Below, in pieces: positions 1 through 58,939 of a stretch of DNA of 64,000 bases. The translations under genes were made by a program, and so were the position numbers. The notes beneath the pieces were generated by a model. It was given only the letters and a program-made list of their open reading frames with translations, was not told where the DNA came from and ran no database searches. How positions within the stretch are numbered: the first letter of the stretch is position 1; every line of letters begins with the position of its first letter. The DNA comes from Macrostomum lignano (Eukaryota), in NCBI GenBank assembly GCA_002269645.1, contig NIVC01003422.1:1-64000 (forward strand), read 5' to 3'.

Positions 1-3000
1 TCATTCAAGCGTCATTTAACAATCATAGAAGCGTCATGTAAACAAGCATAGAGAATGTAAACATCATAGAAGCGTCATGTAAACAATCATCAAGCGTCAT
101 TTAAACAATCATAGAAGCGTCATGTAAACAAGCATAGAAGCGTCATGTAAAAATCATAGAAGCGTCATGTAAACAATCATAGAAGCGTCATGTAAACAAT
201 CATAGAAGCGTCATGTCAAATCATAGAAGCGTCATGTAAACAATCATAGAAGCGTCATGAAACAATCATAGAAGCGTCATGAAACAATCATAGAAGCGTC
301 ATGTAAACATCATAGAAGCGTCATATAAAAAAATCATAGAAGCGTCATGTAAAAATCATAGAAGCGTCATGTAAAGAATCATAGAAGCGTCATGAAACAA
401 TCATAGAAGCGTCATGTAAAAATCATAGAAGCGTCATGTAAACAATCATAGAAGCGTCATGTAAACAATCATAGAAGCGCCATGTAAAAATCATAAAGCG
501 ACATGTAAAAATCATAGAAGCGTCATGTAAAATCATAGAATCGTCCTGCCAAAATCGTAGAAGCGTCATGTAAAAAATCCTTGAAGCGTCATGTAAACAA
601 TCATAGAAGCGTCATGAAACAATCATAGAAGCGTCATGTAAACAATCATAGAAGCGTCATGTAAACAATCTAGAAGCGTCATGTAAACAATCCTGAAGCG
701 TCATGTAAACAATCATAGAAGCGTCATGTAAACAATCCTAGAAGCGTCATGTAAACAATCATTCAAGCGTCATTTAAACAATCATAGAAGCGTCATGTAA
801 ACAATCATTCAAGCGTCATTTAAACAATCATAGAAGCGTCATGTAAACAAGCATAGAAGAATGTAAACAATCATAGAAGCGTCATGTAAACAATCCTAGA
901 AGCGTCATTAAACAATCATAGAAGCGTCATGTAAAAATCATAGAAGCGTCATGTAAAAATCATAGAAGCGTCATGTCAAAATCATAGAAGCGTCATGTAA
1001 ACAATCATAGAAGCGCCATGTAAACAATCATAGAAGCGTCATGTAAAAATCATAGAAGCGTCATGTAAACAATCATAGAAGCGTCATAAAACAATCATAG
1101 AAACGTCATGTAAAAATCATAGAAGCGTCATGTAAACAATCATAGACGCGTCATGTAAACAATCATAGAAGCGTCATGTAAACAATCATAGAAGCGTCAT
1201 GTAAAAATCATAGAAGCGCCATGTAAAAATCATAAAGCGTCATGTAAACAATCATTCAAGCGTCATTTAAACAATCATAGAAGCGTCATGTAAAACAAGC
1301 ATAGAAGAATGTAAACAATCATAGAAGCGTCATGTAAAAATCATAGAAGCGTCATGAAACAATCATAGAAGCGTCATGTAAAAAATCATAAAGCGTCATG
1401 TAAAAATCGTAGAAGCGTCATGTAAAAATCATAGAAGCGTCATGTAAAAATCATAGAAGCGTCATGTAAAAATCATAGAAGCGTCATGTAAAATCGTAGA
1501 ATCGTCCATGCCAAAATCGTAGAAGCGTCATGTAAAAATCATAGAAGCGTCATGTAAAAATCATAGAAGCGTCATGTAAAATCATAGAATCATCTGAAAA
1601 TCTAGAAGCGTCATGTAAAAAATCCTTGAGAAGCGTCATGTAAACAATCATAGAAGCGTCATGAAACAATCATAGAAGCGTCATGTAAACAATCATAGAA
1701 GCGTCATGTAAACAATCCTAGAAGCGTTATGTAAACAATCCTAGAAGCGTCATGTAAACAATCATAGAAGCGTCATGTAAACAATCCTAGAAGCGTCATA
1801 AACAATCATAGAAGCGTCATGTAAACAATCATAGAAGCGTCATGTAAACAATCATAGAAGCGTATGTAAACAATCCTAGAAGCGTCATGTAAACAATCAT
1901 AGAAGCGTCATGTAAACAATCCTAGAAGCGTCATGTAAACAATCATAGAAGCGTCATGTAAACAATCATAGAAGCGCCATGTAAAAATCATAGAAGCATC
2001 ATGTAAACAATCATAGAAGCGTCATAAAAATCATAGAAGCGTTATGTAAAAATGATAGAAGCGTCATATAAAAATCATAGAAGGTCATGTAAACAATCAT
2101 AGAAGCGTCATATAAAAATCATAGAAGCGTCATGTAAACAATCATAGAAGCGTCATGAAACAATCATAGAAGCGTCATGTAAACAATCATAGAAGCGTCA
2201 TGAAACAATCATAGAAGCGTCATGTAAACAATCATAGAAGCGCCATGAAAAAATCATAGAAGCGTCATGTAAACAATCATAGAAGCGTCATGTAAAAATC
2301 ATAGAAGCGTCATATAAAAATCATAGATGCGTCATATAAAAATCATAGAGCGTCATGTAAACAATCATAGAAGCGTCATGTAAACAATCATAGAAGCGTC
2401 ATGTAAACAATCATAGAAGCGTCATGTAAAAAATCATAGAAGCGTCATGTAATGAATCATAGAAGCGTCATGTAAACAATCATAGAAGCGTCATGTAAAC
2501 AATCATAGAAGCGTCATGTAAAAATCATAGAAGCGTCATGTAAAAAATCATAGAAGCGTCATGTAAACAATCATAGAAGCGTCATGTAAAAAATCGTAGA
2601 AGCGTCATTTAAAAATCATAGAAAGCGTTATTTAAAATAATCATAGAAGCGTCATGTAAACAATCAGAGAAGCGTCATGTAAACAATCATAGAAGCGTCA
2701 TGAAACAATCATAGAAGCGTCATGAAACAATCATAGAAGCGTCATGTAAACAATCATAGAAGCGTCATATAAACAATCATAGAAGCGTCATGTAAAAATC
2801 ATAGAAGCGTCATGTAAAGAATCATAGAAGCGTCATGAAACAATCATAGAAGCGTCATGTAAAAATCATAGAAGCGTCATGTAAACAATCATAGAAGCGT
2901 CATGTAAACAATCATAGAAGCGCCATGTAAAAATCATAAAAGCGACATGTAAAAATCATAGAAGCGTCATGTAAAATCATAGAATCGTCTGCAAAATCGT

Positions 3001-5280
3001 AGAAGCGTCATGTAAAAAATCCTTGAAGCGTCATGTAAACAATCATAGAAGCGTCATGAAACAATCATAGAAGCGTCATGTAAACAATCATAGAAGCGTC
3101 ATGTAAACAATCCTAGAAGCGTCATGTAAACAATCCTAGAAGCGTCATGTAAACAATCATAGAAGCGTCATGTAAACAATCCTAGAAGCGTCATGTAAAC
3201 AATCATTCAAGCGTCATTTAAACAATCATAGAAGCGTCATGTAAACAATCATTCAAGCGTCATTTAAACAATCATAGAAGCGTCATGTAAACAAGCATAG
3301 AAGAATGTAAACAATCATAGAAGCGTCATGTAAACAATCCTAGAAGCGTCATTTAAACAATCATAGAAGCGTCATGTAAAAATCATAGAAGCGTCATGTA
3401 AACAATCATAGAAGCGTCATGTCAAAATCATAGAAGCGTCATGTAAACAATCATAGAAGCGCCATGTAAACAATCATAGAAGCGTCATGTAAAAATCATA
3501 GAAGCGTCATGTAAACAATCATAGAAGCGTCATAAAACAATCATAGAAACGTCATGTAAAAATCATAGAAGCGTCATGTAAACAATCATAGACGCGTCAT
3601 GTAAACAATCATAGAAGCGTCATGTAAACAATCATAGAAGCGTCATGTAAACAATCATAGAAGCGCCATGTAAAAATCATAAAGCGTCATGTAAACAATC
3701 ATTCAAGCGTCATTAAACAATCATAGAAGCGTCATGTAAACAAGCATAGAAGAATGTAAACAATCATAGAAGCGTCATGTAAAAATCATAGAAGCGTCAT
3801 GAAACAATCATAGAAGCGTCATGTAAAAAATCATAAAAGCGTCATGTAAAAATCGTAGAAGCGTCATGTAAAAATCATAGAAGCGTCATGTAAAATCATA
3901 GAAGCGTCATGTAAAAATCATAGAAGCGTCATGTAAAATCGTAGAATCGTCCAGCCAAAATCGTAGAAGCGTCATGTAAAAATCATAGAAGCGTCATGTA
4001 AAAATCATAGAAGCGTCATGTAAAATCATAGAATCATCCTGCCAAAATCGTAGAAGCGTCATGTAAAAAATCTTGAAGCGTCATGTAAACAATCATAGAA
4101 GCGTCATGAAACAATCATAGAAGCGTCATGTAAACAATCATAGAAGCGTCATGTAAACAATCCTAGAAGCGTTATGTAAACAATCTAGAAGCGTCATGTA
4201 AACAATCATAGAAGCGTCATGTAAACAATCTAGAAGCGTCATGAAACAATCATAGAAGCGTCATGTAAACAATCATAGAAGCGTCATGTAAACAATCCTA
4301 GAAGCGTTATGTAAACAATCCTAGAAGCGTCATGTAAACAATCATAGAAGCGTCATGTAAACAATCCTAGAAGCGTCATGTAAACAATCATAGAAGCGTC
4401 ATGTAAACAATCATAGAAGCGCCATGTAAAAATCATAGAAGCATCATGTAAACAATCATAGAAGCGTCATATAAAAATCATAGAAGCGTTATGTAAAAAT
4501 GATAGAAGCGTCATATAAAAAATCATAGAAGGGTCATGTAAACAATCATAGAAGCGTCATATAAAAATCATAGAAGCGTCATGTAAACAATCATAGAAGC
4601 GTCATGAAACAATCATAGAAGCGTCATGTAAACAATCATAGAAGCGTCATGAAACAATCATAGAAGCGTCATGTAAACAATCATAGAAGCGCCATGTAAA
4701 AAATCATAGAAGCGTCATGTAAACAATCATAGAAGCGTCATGTAAAAATCATAGAAGCGTCATATAAAAATCATAGAGCGTCATATAAAATCATAGATGC
4801 GTCATGTAAACAATCATAGAAGCGTCATGTAAACAATCATAGAAGCGTCATGTAAACAATCATAGAAGCGTCATGTAAAAAATCATAGAAGCGTCATGTA
4901 ATGAATCATAGAAGCGTCATGTAAACAATCATAGAAGCGTCATGTAAACAATCATAGAAGCGTCATGTAAAAATCATAGAAGCGTCATGTAAAAATCATA
5001 GAAGCGTCATGTAAACAATCATAGAAGCGTCATGTAAAAAATCGTAGAAGCGTCATTTAAAAATCATAGAAAGCGTTATTTAAAATAATCATAGAAGCGT
5101 CATGTAAACAATCAGAGAAGCGTCATGTAAACAATCATAGAAGCGTCATGTAAAAAATCATAGAAGCGTCATGTAAACAATCATAGAAGCGTCAAGAAAA
5201 ATCATAGAAGCGTCATGTAAAAAAAGTCATAGAAGCGTCATGTTAAAATCATAAAGCGTCATGAAAAATCATAGAAGCCT
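1..5280. repeat. Satellite A, 23-bp unit (AATCATAGAAGCGTCATGTAAAC) with a ~2.45-kb higher-order period
   Basis: Continuous tandem array. Rare variant monomers recur 2448 bp apart (GAAAGCGTTATTTAAAATAA at 2621 and 5069). Confidence 0.97.
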
Positions 5281-6196
5281 CATTTAAAAACTAAGGAAAG
5301 TGTCATTTAAAAAATTAAGAAGCATCATGGTAGAATAAAAGAAGCGTCATGTCAGACATGAAGGGTGTCATGTAAAAATAAATGCAGCTATAATGCTGTG
5401 CTGGGGAGAAAAACTGAGACGTTAAGGCTCTCAGAGAATAACTGAGATTACGGGGGGGGTTGCTGAGATGTCAAAGCAAAAGTCAGAAGCTACTTCAAAG
5501 TTCATGTACTTTACTCAATTTTTTTATTACATTCTTTGTTGGCTCGCCACGGGGGGGGTCGCTGATAGAAGAAGAGTCATGTAAAAAATAAAAGTAGCAC
5601 TATGTATACATAAAAGAAAAGTCATGTCGAAGTTAAAAGATTCATTTGGGAATTGCTATGATGTCAAAGCTTGGAGGGAATCGTTACAGTGCTGTGATTC
5701 TTAAAGAAGGAATCACTAAAATGTCAAGGCTTAGGGGAGAAGAATTGCTGAGATTCAAGGCTTTAGGTTGGGTTAAAGTTAGGTTTAGGTCAGGTGTGGG
5801 TTGAGGGTTATATTTTATCGGGTTTCAAGGTTAACGGGGGATTTTTCAGATTTCAAGGTTTATGGAGGCCATCGCTGACATGTCAAGGCTTACGGGGGAA
5901 TAGCTGAGATGTCAAGGCTCACGGGGGTATAAATGAGATTTCAAAGCTAAAGTCAGAAGCTACATGTAAACAATCATGTAAAGTTTATTGAAAACTTTTT
6001 ATTACATTATTTGATGCCTCCTCAGGGGAGGGATCGCTGATAAAAAAAGCGTAATGTAAAAAATAAAAGAAGCTTCATGTCGAAGTTAAGAGATTCATTT
6101 GGGAATCCCTACGATGTCGAGGCTTGCAGGAAATCGCTATAATGCTGTAGCAGTGCTATAATGACTCTTAGAGAGAATTACTGAAATGTCAATGCT

Positions 6197-6258
6197 TTAG
6201 GGTTAGGTTAGGGTTAGGGTTAGGGTTAGGGTTAGGGTTAGGGTTAGGCTAGGGTTAG
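6197..6258 (+). repeat. Interstitial telomeric-type (TTAGGG)n tract, ~10 units
   Basis: Seven perfect TTAGGG units plus TTAGG/CTAGGG variants. A decayed counterpart lies at ~5762-5812. Confidence 0.85.
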
Positions 6259-6968
6259 AAGGTTGACAGATATTTTTAGATTTCCAAGGCTTATTGGGGG
6301 CATTGCTGAGATGTCAAGGGGGGGAGTTGATATGTTAAAGCTTGTGGTGGGGAATTACTGACATGTCAAGGCTTACAAGGTTTGACAGGAGATTTTTTAA
6401 GATTTCAAGGATACATGTAGCTTATTAAAAAAACGTGTAGCGATTGCATTTCTTTGGCTCCCCAACGGGGGGCGTAGATTGCTAGTCCTATATACTAAAA
6501 ATGAGTTGTCTGTATGTATGTGGGTAGGTATGCGATAGATTTCAGAAAAAATGGCTCAACCGATTTTCTTCAAACTTGCACCATTCGATCAGAAATTTTC
6601 CTGGGACGGTACATGCATCTTGGCTAAAAAATTGCTCAATATTAAAGGGATTAAATATTCGAAAAACAGGCTTTTTTGCAAAGGTCAAGCGGCTCTTTCG
6701 ATCTGAAATGCATTGTAAGAATGCTAGAGAAAAAACTGACTGACTGAATTTCAATTCTGATAAAGATTGCATCACAACAAGTTGAAAACAGTGCCAAAGA
6801 AATGCACACACAACTTGATTGAAATTGCGTAACAATATTGCTAACTTAAATTGACACTGATACTGGCTGACTAAGAAATTGATTATGTCATAACTTTTTA
6901 CTCTAACCAACTTGCTGTAAGCATTGAATTATAAGGGCCACAAATCATGTTCGCCAATTGAAAAGAGA

Positions 6969-7031
6969 TAGCATAGATGCGAACAGACTGGACTGCTAAT
7001 GCAGCGACCTGGGTTCCAATCTTAGTGCTGC
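6969..7031 (+). pseudogene. Decayed tRNA-derived segment inside the Helitron
   Basis: A-box-like TAGCATAGATG; anticodon-like arm CTGGA-CTGCTAA-TGCAG; T-arm CTGGG-TTCCAAT-CTTAG. The acceptor stem does not pair. Confidence 0.45.
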
Positions 7032-7519
7032 AAAAAGATTTTTTTATTAAAACACCTTGAAAACACGAAACTGCTAAACATAAAAAAGCACAATGTCAAA
7101 CATAAAAGAGGCACCATGTCAAACATTACATGGGCACCATGTAAAACATATACGTCACTCTATGTCAAACATTAAAGAGCCACCATGTGAAACATAAGAG
7201 TCACCATTTCGAAAATTAAAGAGCCACCACGTCGAACATTAAAGACCCACCATGTCAAACGTAAAAGAGCCACCATGAAGAACATTAAATAGCCACCATG
7301 CCAAACATAAAAGAGCCACTATGTCGAACATTAAAGAGCTAGCATGTCAAACATTAAAGAGCCACCATGTCGAACATAAAAGAGCCGCCATGTAAAACAT
7401 TAAACAGCCACATTGTCAAACATAAAAGAGCCACCATGTAAGACATTTAAGAGCCACCATGTGAAACATTTAAGAGCCACCATGTCAAACCTAAAAGAGC
7501 CACCATGTCGAACATAACA

Positions 7520-8394
7520 TAAGCTGAAATTTGCGCCATTGAGCAGTGTGCCCAGCAACTGTTTCAGGCGAACATTAATAATTTTGACATTAATTTCTAC
7601 ACTGATAGCCAAGCTGCTATTAAGGCCTTAACCACTGAGAATATCTCCGCTGCTACAGTATCTCAATGCCACCGCAGTGTGCAATCTCTCTCAGTCCTTA
7701 ACAGGATTAGAATTATCTGGACACCTGGTCACAGCAACATCCTGGGCAACGAGCTCGCGGACTCTCTCGCCAAGGAGGGCAGCAACCCAGACGGCAACCA
7801 CCGTCTGATGAGGCTACCCACCCCCAGGTCGCAAGTCACCCGCCATATCAACAGGTGGCTCCATCAGCAGCACCAGCTCCACTGGAACAGCTGCACCGAG
7901 TACAGGCAGAGCCGCTCTGCCATGCCTAACCTGAACAGGAAAGTCTCTGATTATCTGATTTCGCTTAACAGAACCGACCTCAGGGAGATGTGCATGGTCC
8001 TAACCGGCCACGGATTCTTCCAGAGACATATATCGTTGCAAACCGGTTGCCCTCCCACCTGTCCCTTCTGTGGCATAGGAGAGGAGACCGCGGAGCATCA
8101 CGTCACCTTCTGCCCTTACTTCAACAAGGCGCGGCACAAATACCTCGGCCACCCCCAGCGGATGGACGAGCTGACCACCGCGGACAATATCCGAGACCTC
8201 CGCGCCTTCGTCCGGGACTCCGGCCGGATGAGGGTCGCCGATGCCTCCACTGCGGACCTGCCGACTACTGGCGGGGACTGGGCGCACCCCCAAGGCTAAT
8301 CCTTGTGCTCTTTTACCTTGGGGTTGCGATAGGGGCCTCGCGGCCTATTCGCGGCGCCTGCGCCCCCCGTCAGTAGTAAGTAAGTAAGTAAGTA
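7520..8394 (+). mobile_element. 5'-truncated non-LTR retrotransposon (I-group, Loa/I-like) with (TAAG)n tail
   Basis: RNase H plus C-terminal CCHC finger ORF, short GC-rich 3'UTR, tail TAGTAAGTAAGTAAGTAAGTA ending at 8394. Flanked by a direct duplication 7290-7519 / 8393-8622. Confidence 0.9.
7523..8299 (+). CDS. C-terminal fragment of LINE ORF2: RNase H domain and CCHC zinc finger
   Basis: The frame is open from 7523, upstream of the track's start: AEICAI...[12 protein letters not shown]...[23 protein letters not shown] (RNase H acidic motifs), then LTGHG...[16 protein letters not shown]. Confidence 0.88.
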
Positions 8395-11300
8395 GCCACC
8401 ATGCCAAACATAAAAGAGCCACTATGTCGAACATTAAAGAGCTAGCATGTCAAACATTAAAGAGCCACCATGTCGAACATAAAAGAGCCGCCATGTAAAA
8501 CATTAAACAGCCACATTGTCAAACATAAAAGAGCCACCATGTAAGACATTTAAGAGCCACCATGTGAAACATTTAAGAGCCACCATGTCAAACCTAAAAG
8601 AGCCACCATGTCGAACATAACAGAGCTACCATGTCAAACATTAAAAAGCCACCATGTCCAACTTAAACGAGCCATTATGTCGTACATTAAAGAGCCACCA
8701 TGTCAAACATTAAACAGCCACCATGTCAAACACAGAAGAGCCACAATGTCAAACATAGATGAGCCACCATGTCAGATATTAAAAAGCCACCGTATCAAAC
8801 ATAAAAGAGTTACCATGTAGAACAAAAAAGAGCCACCATGTCGAACATAAAAGAGCCACCATGTCAAACATAAAAGAGCCAACATGTCAAACCTAAACGA
8901 GCCACCATGTCTAATATTTAAGAGACACCATGTATAAGTGACTTTATGTCAAACATTAAAGAGCCACCATGTCAAGCATAAAAGAGCCACCATGTCAAAC
9001 ATTAAAGAGCCACCATGTCGAACGTTAAAGAGCCACCATGTCAAGCATAAAAGAGCCACCATGTCAAACATTAAAAAGCCATGTCAAACACTAAAGAGCC
9101 ACCATGTCGAAAATAAACGAGCCATTATGTCGTACATTAAAGAGCCACCATGTCGAACATAAAAGAGCCACCATGTCAAACATTAAAGAGCCACCATGTC
9201 AGACATTAAAGAGCCACTATGTCAAACATAAAATAGCCACTATGTCAAACATTAAACAGCCACCATATCGAACACTAAAGAGCCACCATGTCAAACATAT
9301 ATGTGACTCCATGTCAAATATATACGTGACTCCATGTCACACATAAAAGAGCCACCATGTAAAACATATACACATGACTACATAACAAACATTAAACAAC
9401 CATCATGTCGAACATTAAAGAGCCATCATGTCAAAAATTAAAGAGCCACCATGTCAAACATTAAAGACCCACCATGTCAAACATAAAAGAGCCACCATGA
9501 AAAGCATATACGTGACTCCATGCCAAATATATACGTGACTCCATGTCAAACACAGACGTGACTCCATGTGAAACACTAGAGAGCCACCATGTCAAACATT
9601 AAAGAGCCACGATGTCAAACATTTAAGAGCACCATGTTAAACATAAAGGAGCCACCATGTCGAACATTAAAGAGCCACCATTTCAAACATTAAAGAGCCA
9701 TCATTACATTAAGGTGCCACCAGGTCAAACATTAAAGAGCCACCATGTCAAACATTAAAGAGCCACCATGTCGAACATTAAAGAGCCATCATGTCAAACA
9801 TAAAAGAGCCACTATGTCAAACAATAAAGGGACACCATGTCAGACATTAAAAAAAACCCGAATCAAACATAAGAGAGCCACCATGTAGAACATTAAAGAG
9901 CCACCATGTCAAACATAGAAGAGCCACCATGTCAAACATAAAACAGCCACCATGTCAAACATAAAAGAGCCACCATGTCAAACATAAAAGAGCCATCATG
10001 TCAAACATATATGTGACTCCATGTCAAATATATACGTGACTCCATGTCACACATAAAAGAGCCACCATGTAAAACATATACACATGACTACATAACAAAC
10101 ATTAAACAGCCATCATGTCGAACATTAAAGAGCCATCATGTCAAAAATTAAAGAGCCACCATGTCAAACATTAAAGACCCACCATGTCAAACATAAAAGA
10201 GCCACCATGAAAAGCATATACGTGACTCCATGCCAAATATATACGTGACTCCATGTCAAACACAGACGTGACTCCATGTGAAACACTAGAGAGCCACCAT
10301 GTCAAACATTAAAGAGCCACGATGTCAAACATTTAAGAGCACCATGTTAAACATAAAGGAGCCACCATGTCGAACATTAAAGAGCCACCATTTCAAACAT
10401 TAAAGAGCCATCATTACATTAAGGTGCCACCAGGTCAAACATTAAAGAGCCACCATGTCAAACATTAAAGAGCCACCATGTCGAACATTAAAGAGCCATC
10501 ATGTCAAACATAAAAGAGCCACTATGTCAAACAATAAAGGGACACCATGTCAGACATTAAAAAAACCCGAATCAAACATAAGGGAGCCACCATGTCGAAC
10601 ATTAAAGAGCCACCATGTCAAACATAAAAGAGCCACCATGTCAAACATAAAACAGCCACCATGTCAAACATAAAAGAGCCACCATGTCAAACATAAAAGA
10701 GCCATCATGTCAAACATAAAGGAGCCACCATGTCAATCAAAAAAGAGCCACCATGTCAAACTTAAAACAGCCACCATGTCAAACATAAAGGAGCCACCAT
10801 GTCAAACATTAAAGAGCCGCAATGTCAAACATTGAAGAGCCATCATGTCAAACATTGAAGAGCCACCATGTCAAACATTAAAGAGCCACCATGTCGAACA
10901 TTAAAGAGCCACCATGTCCAACATATATGTGACTCCATGTCAAACATTATAGAGCCAGCATGTCAAACATTAAAGTGCTACCATGTCAAACATAGAAGAG
11001 CCACCATGTCGAACAATAACGAGTCACCATGTCAAGTATATTCGTGACTCCATGTCAAACATAAAAGAGCTACCATGAAGAACATTAAAGAGCCACCACG
11101 TAAAACATTAAAGAGCCACCATGTCAAACATAAAAGAGCCATCATGTCAAACATAAAGGAGCCACCATGTCAATCAAAAAAGAGCCACCATGTCAAACAT
11201 AAAGGAGCCACCATGTCAAACATTAAAGAGCCGCAATGTCAAACATTAAAGAGCCATCATGTCGAACAATAAAGAGCCACCATGTCTAACATTAAAGAGC

Positions 11301-12024
11301 CACCATGTCGAACATTAAAGAGCCACCATGTCTAACATTAAAAAGCCACCTTTTTGAACATAAAAGAGCAACCAATGTCGAACATTAAAGAACCACTATG
11401 TCCAACATAAAAGAGCCACCATGTCAAACATAAAAGAGCCATCATGTCAAACATTAAAGAGCCACCATTTCGAACATTAAAGAGCCACCATGTCAAACAG
11501 TAAAGAGCCACCATGTCAAGCAAAAAAGAGCCACCATGTCCAACATAAAAGAGCCACCATGTCAAACATTAAAAGAGCCGCAATGTCAAACATTAAAGAG
11601 CCATCATGTCTAACATTAAAGAGCCACCATGTCGAACATTAAAGAGCCACCATGTCTAACATAAAGAGCCACCATTTCAAACATAAAAGAGCCACCATGT
11701 CAAAAATTAAAGAGCCATAATGTCAAACAGTAAAACGCCACCATGTCAAACAATAAAGAGACACCATGTCAGACATTAAAAAAACCCTGAATCAAACATA
11801 AGAGAGCCACCATGTAGAACATAAAAGAGCCACCATGTCAAACATTAAAGAGCCACCATGTCAAACATTAAAAAGCCACCATGTCAAACATTAAAGAGCC
11901 ACCATGTCAAACATAAAATTTACACAATTTCAAACGTAAAAGTAAGCGTCATGCCAATTTTAAAGGAGCCACTATAGAGCTAAGGAAATTGTAGCACTAG
12001 CTACTTTACTTATTGTATGGTGGA

Positions 12025-16897: not shown

Positions 16898-17233
16898 TCA
16901 GATGTCCATTTCAAACTCAGTGCTGCCGGCAGTCTCTGGCTGCTTCTGAGTTGTAGGCTTGTCACTATTTTTCTTATTGTTATTGTTCTCTTTCTCCTCC
17001 TCAGGACAGGTGACTCCAGGGATGCGGGGCAGGTTGGCTGGCGGAGTCTTGGCCAAGGGGCTGTCACGACGGCTGATTAGAAAATCTCTATCATAGATAA
17101 TGCGAGTGCCACCTGGGGTGGTACTGAAGATGGTACCGCCAGGTGTTTGGGAATAATCACGCGGCATCTGTGAGGTACTGGTGAGACGCACACGCCTGAC
17201 TGGGATGCCATTAGCTTGACCTGCAACACTCAT
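16898..17233 (-). CDS. EIF4EBP: Eukaryotic translation initiation factor 4E-binding protein (4E-BP), 111 aa, single coding exon
   Basis: [27 protein letters not shown] contains the two TP phospho-sites and the YxxxxLΦ eIF4E-binding motif. SPLAKTPP (S65/T70 equivalents) and the C-terminal TOS motif FEMDI are present. Confidence 0.97.
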
Positions 17234-53900: not shown

Positions 53901-56900
53901 CAACCCCAAGCCTGAAGGAATGAACCCCAATCCCAAGCCTGAATGAACCCCAATTCGAATACTTAGCAAGACACTCATACCGAAACGAAAAGCAACCATA
54001 CTTAGATAGACCTAATATATAAGTAAAGACAGCACAATAACTGATAGATGCCAGTGAAGCAGTGTGAAAAACAATTTCAACTAGGCGAAAAGCCGAAAGC
54101 ATTCTGGAAATGAAAGCCGGTTATACCCTTGTACAAAATGACACACAAATACATTGATAGATAGAAGTTATGCAGATACACAGCCGTATGCAATGCAGAC
54201 GATTTGCAGGAAGGCAACTTAAGCCTGCCCAGTAAACACTAAAATCTGAAAAGATTCCTTATCACTGCCAAAATGCACAGTACAGTGGCAGAGAAGAGGA
54301 GAGAGCGACCAAAATCAAGTACATTCAATTTTTGGCCAGGTAGTTTAACTATCAATCCGATTGCACAGCTGCAAGCCATCCGCTGAAACATGATGAACAG
54401 TGTTCTGTTTAGCACCGAAATATTCACAAATATTTCAATCATCTTTCTGTGTTGCCTACTTACTGACGTTTTCAACGTTTTAAGAAAATTTAAACCCTTT
54501 CGACATCTGCTGGGTAAAGGGCGCTGGGTGCCTAAGATTTAATAGATTTGGTAGCTGGATTAGCGAATTTGGTAGCTGGATTAGCGGAGTTGGTAGCTGG
54601 ATTAGCGGAGTTGGTAGCTGGATTAGCGGAGTTGGTAGCTGGATTAGCGGAGTTGGTAGCTGGATTAGCGGAGTTTGTAGCTGGATTAGCGGATTTGGTA
54701 GCTGGATTAGCGGAGTTTGTAGCTGGATTAGCGGAGTTGGTAGCTGGATTAGCGGAGTTGGTAGCTGGATTAGCGGAGTTGGTAGCTGGATTAGCGGATT
54801 TGGTAGCTGGATTAGCGGAGTTTGTAGCTGGATTAGCGGAGTTGGTAGCTGGATTAGCGGATTTGGTAGCTGGATTAGCGGAGTTTGTAGCTGGATTAGC
54901 GGAGTTGGTAGCTGGATTAGCGGAGTTGGTAGCTGGATTAGCGGAGTTGGTAGCTGGATTAGCGGATTTGGTAGCTGGATTAGCGGATTTGGTAGCTGGA
55001 TTAGCGGAGTTGGTAGCTGGATTAGCTGATTTGGTAGCTGGATTAGCGGATTTGGTAGCTGGATTAGCTGATTTGTGGATTGGCAGATTTATGGATTGGC
55101 AGATTTGTGGATTGGCAGATTTGTGGATTGGCAGATTTGCGGATTGGCAGATTTGTGGATTGGCAGATTTAGTGACTGGATTAGCAGATTTGGTGACTGG
55201 ATTAGCAGATTTGGTGGCTGGATTAGCAGATTTGGTAGCTGGGTTGGCAGATTTGGTGGCTGGATTGGCATATTTGGTGACTGGATTGGTAGATTTGGTG
55301 GATGGATTGGCAGATTTGGTAACTGGGTTGGCAGATTTGGTAGCTGGGTTGGCAGATTTGGTGACTCGATTGGCAGATTTGGTAGCTGGATTAGCAGATT
55401 TGGTAGCTGGGTTGGCAGATTTGGTGACTGGATTGGCAGATTTGGTGACTGGATTGGCAGATTTGGTAGCTGGATTAGCAGATTTGGTAGCTGGGTTGGC
55501 AGATTTGGTGACTGGATTGGCAGATTTGGTGACTGGATTGGCAGATTTGGTAGCTGGATTAGCAGATTTGGTAGCTGGGTTGGCAGATTTGGTGACTGGA
55601 TTAGCGGATATGGTAGCTGGGTTGGCAGATTTGGTGACTGGATTGGCAGATTTGGTGACTGGATTGGCAGATTTGGTAGCTGGGTTGGCAGATTTGGTGA
55701 CTGGATTGGCAGATTTGGTAGCTGGATTGGCAGATTTGGCATCTGTATATTTAGACTTTCACAACTGAAAGAGCTTGCAGCTTAAAGAGAAGTTATAAAT
55801 TTTAGTAAACACTTCAATAGGCCTTCCATTTCGCCAGAGCAAAAAGATAGATTAAATAAGGAATTATACAAGGCGCAATAGATCTAAAGCTAAGCTTTAG
55901 ACTGGCTGCGCGCACCGTCAACACAGATAAGATGCATTAGCCAAGTCTGCCAACCTGCTAGCTGACAAATTTAGATTGAAAATCTATTCAAGTGATGGGC
56001 TTAGCCGAAGGAGAGGCGATATCTCGCATTGTACATAATAAAATCTACGAACTTGAAAATAGATAATTAAGTATTTTCAAGGCGCTGCCGTATTCACTTT
56101 CATATTGCATTGTACGCAGAGCAGAGATGGAAAGAGAAACAACAGATAGCGGCCATTGCTCACTGTACACTTCTATACAGTGAATGTGTTATTCATTCCG
56201 TTTAGCAGAAGCAGGCACACCACACAGCCTATTGTGCGTCACTTATGCATACACGAGCTTATGTTGCTAATTATAGAATGCACTTTGTGTTTTTTTTTAT
56301 AAACGTCCTCGAACTCGAACTTGCGACCTCTTAGGATGAGAACATTAACCTCACACGCTCACTCAGGGTGTACACTCTTTGTGGTTTGGGATTTCAGGGA
56401 ATCGAACCAGGGTTGATAATTGAATAGATGCAGCTGACTCACCCGGACCCCAGCTTCTTATTCTCCAGCGAGTAGCTGTCCTCGTAGGCGCCGAATGTCA
56501 GCAGAGACTTCAATTCGCCGTAGAACTCCTCGTCGGTCATCTTCTTTTTTCGATTACGCCGGGTGGCCACCGGTCCGGCAGCTCCACCACCGGCCCCGGC
56601 AGCGTTGCCATGGTGATCAATGCCGGTCGCCGTCGCCGCAGGCGCGGCAGATTTGCCGGCGCCGTCGTGATTCGACGAAGGCGTTGTCGGCGTTTTATTG
56701 CCTGAGGTTGTTGACGAGGAATCGGAGGTTTTGGCGGCGGCGGCGGCGGCCGAGATGGCAGCGGCGGAGGCCGCCGCGGTGGCGGTCTCGTCAACCTGGC
56801 GAGTGGCAGGGGTCGGTGTGTGCGTTGTGACAGGCGCCGGTGAATCGCCCTGCCCGGTCTGCTGTTGCTGCTGCTGCTGCTTCTTGTCTGCAGCTGGCGG

Positions 56901-57275
56901 CGGCGGCGACTGCGGCGGGCTGGGTCCCCGCCCTGTGTCGTTCAGCGCCTCCCTGGAGCCGTTGTAGTCGGTGGCCAAGCCGCTATCGTCGCTGCCAACG
57001 TTCATGTACTTGACGTCGCCTTTAGCCATTTTATTAACATTATCGTTGAACAAGTTGAACGCGTTCACAATCTGCTGCGGATTCTCGCGTCTGGCGTCTG
57101 CATCGAATTCATTCTCTAGCCAGCGCTGCCACATCTCCGGGATGCCACGGAACTCCCCAGTGCTGGGATCAATCTCTATGTGAATGTTCTTTTTGACGTC
57201 TGTGGGCAGGCCGATCTCCATCTGGGAGGCGTCCCTGGCGCTATCCTTCTTTTTGCGGGGACCGAAAATCGGCAT
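50102..57275 (-). CDS. PAK: p21-activated kinase, group I (PAK1/2/3-like), ~550 aa; exons 57275-56443, 52146-51866, 51296-50983, 50326-50102
   Basis: PBD/autoinhibitory region EIGLP...[11 protein letters not shown]...NPQ; kinase motifs [51 protein letters not shown] with matching phases (2,1,0); total 1653 nt = 551 codons. Confidence 0.95.
50375..50973. repeat. (GACA)n microsatellite filling PAK intron 3
   Basis: Long tetranucleotide array. Confidence 0.97.
51410..51608. repeat. 16-bp repeat (GAGCTTGTGAAGACTC) in PAK intron 2
   Basis: About 12 variant copies. Confidence 0.88.
51632..51760. repeat. 17-bp repeat (GGAGGTCAAAGGTCAAG) containing consensus DR1 elements, PAK intron 2
   Basis: AGGTCAAAGGTCA at 51643, 51676, 51710 and 51745, plus variants. 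Confidence 0.85.
52290..53952. repeat. 23/27-bp minisatellite (AACCCCAATCCCAAGCCTGAATG[AAGG]) in PAK intron 1
   Basis: Tandem array with a thrice-repeated variant block (~52311, ~52768, ~53100). Confidence 0.95.
54548..55740. repeat. 21-bp minisatellite (GGATTAGCGGAGTTGGTAGCT grading to GGATTGGCAGATTTGGTGACT) in PAK intron 1
   Basis: Tandem array with a 16-bp-unit interlude at ~55070-55170. Confidence 0.95.
56290..56410 (-). pseudogene. Decayed tRNA/SINE-like fragments near the PAK exon 1 donor
   Basis: Minus strand: B-box GGTTCGATTCC (56399-56409), and further on CTCATCCTAAGAGGTCGCAAGTTCGAG followed by an A-run. Confidence 0.3.
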
Positions 57276-58939
57276 CGCGATGCTGGCATGCAAAGAGAAT
57301 GCGCATCAATAGTTCGATTTTTAGCGATTTCCTTCTGATAGCTCTTTTGAACACATTAGATAGTGGGTTATTGCAGGTAAGAAGGTAATAATTGCAAAAA
57401 TTAATTGATTAGAATATTTTAGCCGCATCTGTTATGACTTGGAGAAAACAGCTTTTGGAAAGCACTCACTTAGTATTGTAATGCAGGACATGCCAAATAA
57501 GTAGTCTAATAATTACACTTTTACAAAAATGCTATAATAATGGCTTAGTGCCAGATTGCATTGCCAACTCACAAAATTGGATGGGTCTATATAATAAATA
57601 CCAAAAAGTACTAAAATACTCTATTAATGTTATTAAAATGTGAATAGTGCAAATATATTTTCAGTTTTTATATTTTTATCAAGCTATACCTGATTCTGAA
57701 TAGATTATATCATTAATGATTGGCTACTATTAGGTTGTAAGACTTTCTATTAAAATAAAATTTAAATGGCATATAAATTTATGCATCTATTTGTTGCAAC
57801 TTTCTTAATCATTTCTTATTTCACCTTCACTTGTCTATGCTTATTCTGCTCTCTCTCTCTCTTTTTTAGTTCAATTTTGTTCTTCTTATCCCTCTCTGTT
57901 GCTACCTTCTGATTGGCTCTCCATTTTTGCCTCTCCTCATTTGCACACTAAACCTATTCTCATCTTATCTAATTGCATTGAAACCCCAAAAATAGCCTTA
58001 AATAGCCTGAAACTATCCTACCTATCTGACTCCTGATAATTTAGTCTGGTCTATTTTAACATTACAAGCAAATGAAATACTGTAAGTAAAATAGTTCACT
58101 CATTTCTCTATACTCAAGATAATAGTTTATAATAGAATATGAGCAATAGTATATATAGATTTGCTTACTTCTTATAGCTGCTTCTAAAATGTTTGTGGTG
58201 TTTATATATAAATTTCTTTCTATTAAATTTACCCTTAACTTTTGAATTTTTTCAATGAAAAACTTAATACTATAAACCATATTATAGTGTTACTATGTAT
58301 ATATTATCATAACCTATTGGAATAAGTTTGAAAAAACTCATGGATGCAAAATATAGACTAAAAGTATAACAAAATAGAGAAGCATAAAATAATGCATTAT
58401 AGCCTGTATATTTTTAGATTTTTCTATATTGCATTAAACCTAAAGCAAAGTTGAGACAGGGTATAAGTTGCACTGCCAATAATGGCATTTGGAATATTTT
58501 TGCTATATAACTAAAGCCATAATATTACTATTGATATCTTTTTAACAAAAATATTATTGGACAAAATCTTATATAAAAATGCCTTTAAAGCAAATTGATT
58601 CATAGATAAAGTCATTTAGTTAAACTTTTAGTAGGGAGTCAAGGACCAATAAGAGTTTTATAACTTGCTAATACATATAAAAAAGGCAAATTTAATTTAA
58701 ATAAAAAGCAGTTTTTTGCAAATGCAATGTAATTATATAAAATAAAAAGCAAATATAAACTACACTGTTTTTTACTTTTTGACTTGAAAAATTAGTCAGT
58801 TCTACTACAAAAAGTCAAGTTCTGCTAAAGGGACTAAAGATAAAATGAATGTTTTCACTTTGAAGGGGAGCTCTCAAGTCTCTGCATCAATTTGGGGACT
58901 TAGCAATAAAGATTTTCAATGCTATCCACATGTACACTA

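Follow-up and report, generated by a model that had tools for sequence, protein, structure and literature searches.

In a 64-kb stretch of the Macrostomum lignano genome (64,000 nt of contig NIVC01003422.1, hereafter the window, to which all within-window searches refer), a 5'-truncated long interspersed nuclear element (LINE) interrupts an array of 23-bp satellite repeats, and the same ten satellite monomers stand on both sides of it without a single difference between the two copies. We conclude, with good though not complete confidence, that this arrangement records a very recent target-primed reverse transcription (TPRT) event that produced a target-site duplication of 228–230 bp and left the array ten monomers longer. 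The recency follows from the zero differences across 230 bp and from the intact reading frame of the insert. The usual target duplications of LINEs measure 5–25 bp. Private variants among the satellite monomers allow both junctions to be read to base resolution, and the locus provides a clean natural example, from the germline, in which a LINE on integrating duplicated its target over hundreds of base pairs, with ten satellite monomers gained as a by-product.

Two identical satellite blocks abut a LINE insert

The two flanking copies of the duplicated segment, which we call block A, occupy positions 7290–7519 (left) and 8393–8622 (right), both on the forward strand. Sequence comparison revealed that they match at 230/230 positions, and that the match is a maximal exact one, the outer neighbouring bases differing on either side. 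Monomer parsing resolves block A into exactly ten 23-bp monomers. The insert at 7520–8392 (873 bp) is directly adjoined by the last base of the left block (7519) and the first base of the right block (8393). An earlier sequence-only reading had described the flanks, by eye, as identical and exactly abutting the insert; exact comparison bears this out, with edges at 7519/7520 and 8392/8393, and the private monomer variants which that reading had named (GAGCTAGCATG, GAGCCGCCATG and CAGCCACATTG) are indeed present in each copy. The first monomer of block A carries the rare variant TAGCC, which occurs twice in the array as against 83 occurrences of GAGCCAC.

This identity lies far above chance. 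Block A matches its in-register right neighbour at only 81% of positions, and none of its 40-mers recurs exactly elsewhere in the window. Setting aside one unrelated 710-bp duplication, other pairs of 230-bp segments in the array match at 214/230 positions at best. The zero count of shared 40-mers also rules out, within the window, a recurrence of the block independent of the insert, a prospect which the earlier reading had itself raised.

The surrounding satellite was delimited with Tandem Repeats Finder (TRF) and monomer parsing. The left end of the array (unit about GAGCCACCATGTCAAACATTAAA) lies upstream of block A at 7076–7289, and the remaining array (8623–11918) continues in register from the point where block A stops. 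TRF reported rows at 7076–7515 and 8394–11918, both with period 23 and with no other period. Deleting the insert together with one block yields a reconstructed empty site that reads ...AACATAACA/GAGCTACC... (the slash marks the joint) and restores a perfectly phased array. In this reconstructed array, identity falls monotonically with offset, from 0.775 at 23 bp to 0.495 at 230 bp; we detected no peak at 230 bp, and the sole extra peak lies at an offset of 710. A higher-order repeat is ruled out by the absence of 230-bp periodicity combined with the TRF period of 23 only. Neither head-to-tail copies nor a recurring period, as would mark a satellite higher-order repeat or unequal exchange, is seen for block A, as 873 bp of LINE lie between its copies.

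The extra peak corresponds to a near-perfect tandem duplication elsewhere in the same array, 9287–9996 followed by 9997–10705, which is free of any insert. Its period is 710 and then 709, reflecting one 1-bp indel, and it includes an exact run of 456 bp (9400–9855 equal to 10110–10565). This is a recent multi-monomer duplication that arose in the array without any LINE.

Both junctions of the insert are informative. The 3' junction reads ...TAAGTAAG/TAGCCACC, and the TA at 8393–8394 continues the (TAAG)4 tail at 8377–8392, an overlap that the sequence-only reading had correctly noticed. As this TA can be assigned to the tail or to the target, the length duplicated by the insertion comes to 228–230 bp. 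In the left copy, TAGCC sits in normal array context (AACATTAAA/TAGCC), and its T is therefore a genuine target variant. The 5' junction reads ...CATAACA/T/AAGCTGAAATT and displays no clear microhomology. Its single junction base, the T at 7520, stands where the element family has a C: other M. lignano copies (P0019, P0021) read ...SVFQAEICAI, with the Gln codon CAA before AEICAI, and the window instead has TAA GCT GAA. Judged from this alignment, the T may be either a 1-nt non-templated filler or a substitution.

A truncated RNase H-bearing element and its relatives

The insert proper (7521–8392, forward strand) was recognized as a fragment of a 5'-truncated non-long-terminal-repeat (non-LTR) retrotransposon from its GC content (52–65%, compared with 35–41% in the satellite), its translation, Pfam domains and protein matches. 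It encodes the C-terminal part of open reading frame 2 (ORF2) at 7523–8299, comprising 258 codons with no internal stop and a TAA stop at 8297–8299. The first portion of this frame (7523–7783) encodes an RNase H domain that lacks its N-terminal third, matching Pfam PF00075 at profile positions 45–140 of 141 (E=1.2e-7; 32.4 bits against a cut-off of 25.8). A Cys/His motif follows at 8048–8125; its match to zf-RVT (PF13966) is weak (E=0.059, below the cut-off), and the motif is invariant between the window and the related protein P0001. The 77-bp 3' untranslated region (UTR) at 8300–8376 aligns with a related element, L001, up to the tail.

As the copy begins at position 45 of the RNase H profile, at about residue 980 of relatives of about 1,235 amino acids, it is a strongly 5'-truncated LINE on the forward strand. 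The insert thus combines the traits of a LINE integrated by TPRT, namely ORF2 homology, a defined 3' terminus with a simple-repeat tail, 5' truncation and an abutting direct duplication, of which only the length is atypical. The family is young, as the insert protein is 100% identical over 169 amino acids to the M. lignano UniRef model P0019 and 99% identical to model P0002.

Searches for further copies gave negative results at several scales. Neither blastn nor tblastn revealed another copy in the window; exact-protein look-ups in public data with P0002 and three variants of the window ORF matched nothing; metagenome scans with a protein pattern and with the conserved 3' terminus gave no further copies of the family, and neither did a scan of viral contigs. 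We found no tRNA or SINE (short interspersed nuclear element) features near the array. Transduction of 3' or 5' flanking sequence is ruled out, given that nothing but the tail separates the 3' UTR from the right block and that block A is unique.

An exhaustive profile search returned 12,124 homologues of the insert protein. Six of the eight relatives that we checked are full-length, at about 1,200–1,280 amino acids, and share the order apurinic/apyrimidinic (APE) endonuclease, reverse transcriptase (RT) and RNase H (Exo_endo_phos_2, RVT_1 and RNase_H in Pfam). A further relative, L002, has a separate ORF1 upstream and hence two ORFs. L001, which lies on a metagenome contig and is 62% identical in amino acid sequence, ends with the same ...CCCCCGTCAGTAGTAAGTAAG as the insert, which identifies the right end of the insert as the element's natural 3' terminus. 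The conserved pattern at this terminus is ...CCCCCGTCAG(TAG)(TAAG)n. A third relative, L003, resembles these elements in its UTR but carries (ATG)n as its tail.

The 3' UTR also contains a putative stem-loop kept among elements that are at most 62% identical in amino acid sequence (window 8306–8372; L001 1026–1094; L003 5094–5160). RNAalifold applied to the three UTRs predicted 18 pairs, 3 of them compensatory, which with three sequences amounts to weak evidence, and the single-sequence 3' UTR folds no better than its shuffles (z about −0.9). Conservation of a stem-loop despite differing tail repeats suggests that the RT may recognize the 3' end specifically.

We detected no target duplications around L001, L002 or L003 in their 114–230-bp flanks, which are too short to be informative. 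Site-specific targeting of satellites found no support, as L001 and L003 lie in unrelated flanks.

The sequence-only reading had called the insert an RNase H-bearing I-group element. The RNase H is confirmed by the PF00075 match. I-group membership is plausible from the order of APE endonuclease, RT and RNase H in relatives, of which this truncated copy itself shows the RNase H. The RTE clade is excluded because an RNase H domain is present, and L002 moreover has a separate ORF1. The Dualen clade was also rejected: Pfam gives only Exo_endo_phos(_2), RVT_1 and RNase_H in the eight relatives (the insert itself being truncated), and no restriction-like endonuclease.

Among the M. lignano protein models, P0002–P0007, P0019 and P0021 fuse the endonuclease or linker region straight to RNase H with no RT domain between them, and Pfam reported RVT_1 as absent from P0002 and P0006. 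Either the RT was spliced out by gene prediction, or the genome is rich in derivatives that have lost the RT by internal deletion.

Origin of the duplication

Several features argue for TPRT with a long target-site duplication. The duplication is exact, maximal and abutting; it encloses a segment of foreign GC content that carries RNase H and the C-terminal region of ORF2; the insert ends at its natural 3' terminus, as L001 does, with a 2-nt overlap between tail and target; and block A is unique in the window, in an array that has no 230-bp period and whose empty site is in phase.

The window shows directly how the two junctions read, where the element is truncated and that the duplication is exact; from this we infer the following order of events. 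At the left edge of block A, a nick would have opened the bottom strand opposite 7289/7290 (within 2 nt). The 3' end so exposed, ...GGCTA-3', would then have annealed to UA in the RNA tail, (UAAG)n, and served as the primer for cDNA, creating the right junction between tail and TAGCC. Only 872–873 nt were copied or retained, and the copy stops within the RNase H domain, 1 nt away from the Gln codon. The top strand would have been broken 228–230 bp downstream, after ...CATAACA (CATAACA/GAGC), and its 3' end joined to the end of the cDNA via one filler base (T), with no clear microhomology. Fill-in of the two single-stranded copies of ten monomers would finally have produced two perfect copies, and the array would thereby have grown by ten monomers and the insert.

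A nick at a remote position, the source suggested for long target duplications of L1, would be the most likely cause of the distant second break; another possibility is that the reciprocal end was first lengthened by copying the sister chromatid or homologue and then captured. Read each on its own strand, the two break sites are dissimilar in sequence. The sequence fits a remote nick and reciprocal-end repair synthesis alike, and separates neither these two nor the pair of mechanisms offered by the sequence-only reading, in which the element makes widely staggered cuts or second-strand synthesis mis-primes exactly ten satellite units away. The core of the former reading, in which an inserted LINE is flanked by a target-site duplication of about 230 bp, holds up in every comparison made within the window, but its appeal to mis-priming is not needed. 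A length in register with the monomers is expected by chance in about 1/23 to 3/23 of cases (roughly 4–13%) given the 2-nt ambiguity; with two bases common to tail and target, "exactly 10 units" by itself lends no support to register-dependent mis-priming.

Some considerations weigh against a TPRT origin of the duplication. The pre-insertion state is reconstructed rather than directly seen, and two breaks about 230 bp apart would require either unwinding over a long distance or additional repair synthesis. Among LINEs with an RNase H the best known is the I factor, whose target duplications are about 10–14 bp. The array produces multi-monomer duplications by itself, as at 9287–10705, and the short flanks of L001, L002 and L003 make them uninformative in this respect.

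Of the competing explanations, an assembly artefact fares best, and we regard it as distinctly unlikely. Satellite arrays are hard to assemble in the repeat-rich M. lignano genome, and mis-assembly of a repetitive, possibly heterozygous or polyploid locus could have created the duplication or misplaced the insert; the structure is read from the assembly alone, and such an error would likewise show perfect identity. However, the whole structure measures just 1.33 kb, which single long reads can span, and its LINE junctions are normal (natural 3' end with tail, 5' truncation, exact abutment), which is unexpected of an overlap-based mis-join.

It is very improbable that the array already held block A in tandem, through unequal exchange or slippage, and that the LINE later struck the joint between the copies with a duplication of 0–2 bp. 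The insert-free 710-bp-period duplication, with its 456-bp exact run, demonstrates that such tandems form in this array, and the TA overlap permits a 0–2-bp target duplication. Yet one bond (within 1 nt) among about 3,700 in the array would have to be hit, a coincidence with odds of roughly 1 in 1,000; neither event could be old, given the 0 differences; and we observed no sign that the joint (ACA/TAG) is a preferred target.

Only a slim chance attaches to a DNA template switch of the fork stalling and template switching (FoSTeS) or microhomology-mediated break-induced replication (MMBIR) type, leaving the array at 7519, copying 873 bp of a genomic LINE and returning 230 bp behind: it would yield an insertion with a flanking duplication and short microhomology or filler, as in the TA at the 3' side and the 1-nt filler at the 5' side, but the copy stops precisely where the element itself does, at the natural 3' terminus with its tail (compare L001), which is expected of an RNA-templated copy and a coincidence for a DNA template.

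Genomic setting and comparison with known target duplications

The array that received the LINE has a relative nearby. About ten interstitial TTAGGG telomere-type repeats at 6197–6258 (context 5352–7076), flanked by short degenerate 29-bp repeats, lie between two related 23-bp satellite arrays, at 7–5352 (unit AAGCGTCATGTAAACAATCATAG) and 7076–11918 (unit AGCCACCATGTCAAACATTAAAG). Further along the window, 22959–55739 is a succession of about 35 differing minisatellite arrays with units of 4–350 bp, each array extending about 0.1–1.7 kb. Unique spacers of a few hundred base pairs separate them, and self-BLAST found no dispersed repeats among the spacers. This satellite-rich window apparently also holds host genes, as judged from an uninterrupted ORF for an eIF4E-binding protein at 16898–17233 on the reverse strand (Pfam eIF_4EBP, E=1e-41) and an ORF with a P21-Rho-binding domain at 56439–57293, also on the reverse strand (E=2e-9).

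We found no description of M. lignano non-LTR elements or their target duplications in the literature. The sequence-only reading had held that very long duplications are known mainly from RTE-clade elements. This does not agree with the published lengths that we consulted: RTE-clade duplications are mostly 7–15 bp (Ichiyanagi and Okada 2008, cited in PMC6007223), and long ones are on record for L1, Dualen and R9 (PMC5223499, PMC9977147). Human L1 target duplications longer than 100 bp make up to 10% of HeLa events (PMC5223499, which cites Gilbert 2002/2005 and Symer 2002 for long L1 duplications). In cells deficient in nucleotide excision repair (NER), L1 duplications reach a median of 1,495 bp and a maximum of 5.3 kb, and use of a distal, unrelated nick has been proposed for long ones (PMC5223499). 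Small tandem duplications that carry an L1 at their junction have likewise been described as large target duplications (bioRxiv 10.1101/2024.12.14.628481). De novo insertions of Dualen-4b_cRei in Chlamydomonas exhibit median duplications of 900 bp, and in bdelloid rotifers the element R9 makes target duplications of 126 bp (PMC9977147).

The M. lignano insert resembles human L1 in being a 5'-truncated copy of an APE-type endonuclease LINE (the APE here being seen in relatives), in keeping its 3' tail whole at the junction where priming took place, and in having a direct target duplication of hundreds of base pairs adjoining both ends. It differs from L1 in belonging to an RNase H-bearing family of another clade, with a microsatellite tail in place of poly(A), and in its setting, the flatworm germline and a 23-bp satellite target as opposed to cultured human cells or tumours. 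Dualen and R9 are likewise non-LTR elements flanked by target duplications exceeding 100 bp, although in those families long duplications are the rule, whereas a single copy is seen here. They use or include a restriction-like endonuclease, in contrast to the insert's relatives, in which Pfam gives only APE, RT and RNase H.

An architectural parallel exists with the RNase H-bearing APE LINEs (I, LOA, Tad1, Nimb and related clades). Like them, this family has RNase H after RT, a C-terminal Cys/His motif, frequent 5' truncation, two ORFs (in L002) and a tail of short units, (TAAG)n here and (ATG)n in L003. The tail of the I factor is (TAA)n. The duplication of 228–230 bp sets the insert apart from the I factor, in which about 10–14 bp is typical. 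Duplications made by unequal exchange within satellites share with this locus an integer gain (ten monomers) and perfect identity, and the LINE-free duplication of 710-bp period in the same array is an example; unlike them, block A has foreign DNA exactly at the junction of its copies and no 230-bp periodicity.

We consider it unlikely that target duplications of hundreds of base pairs are regular in this M. lignano LINE family or in its satellite insertions, perhaps in whole-monomer steps with both strand breaks phased by the monomer sequence. If they were family-wide, retrotransposition would be a recurrent driver of satellite-array growth in a repeat-rich genome, and the family would provide a natural setting in which to study second-strand cleavage; taken as a single event, the insertion is a curiosity. 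With it, a flatworm RNase H element joins the few LINEs for which target duplications exceeding 100 bp are on record (L1, Dualen and R9), and the long duplication here is a fresh example of a known rare outcome, not a new mechanism.

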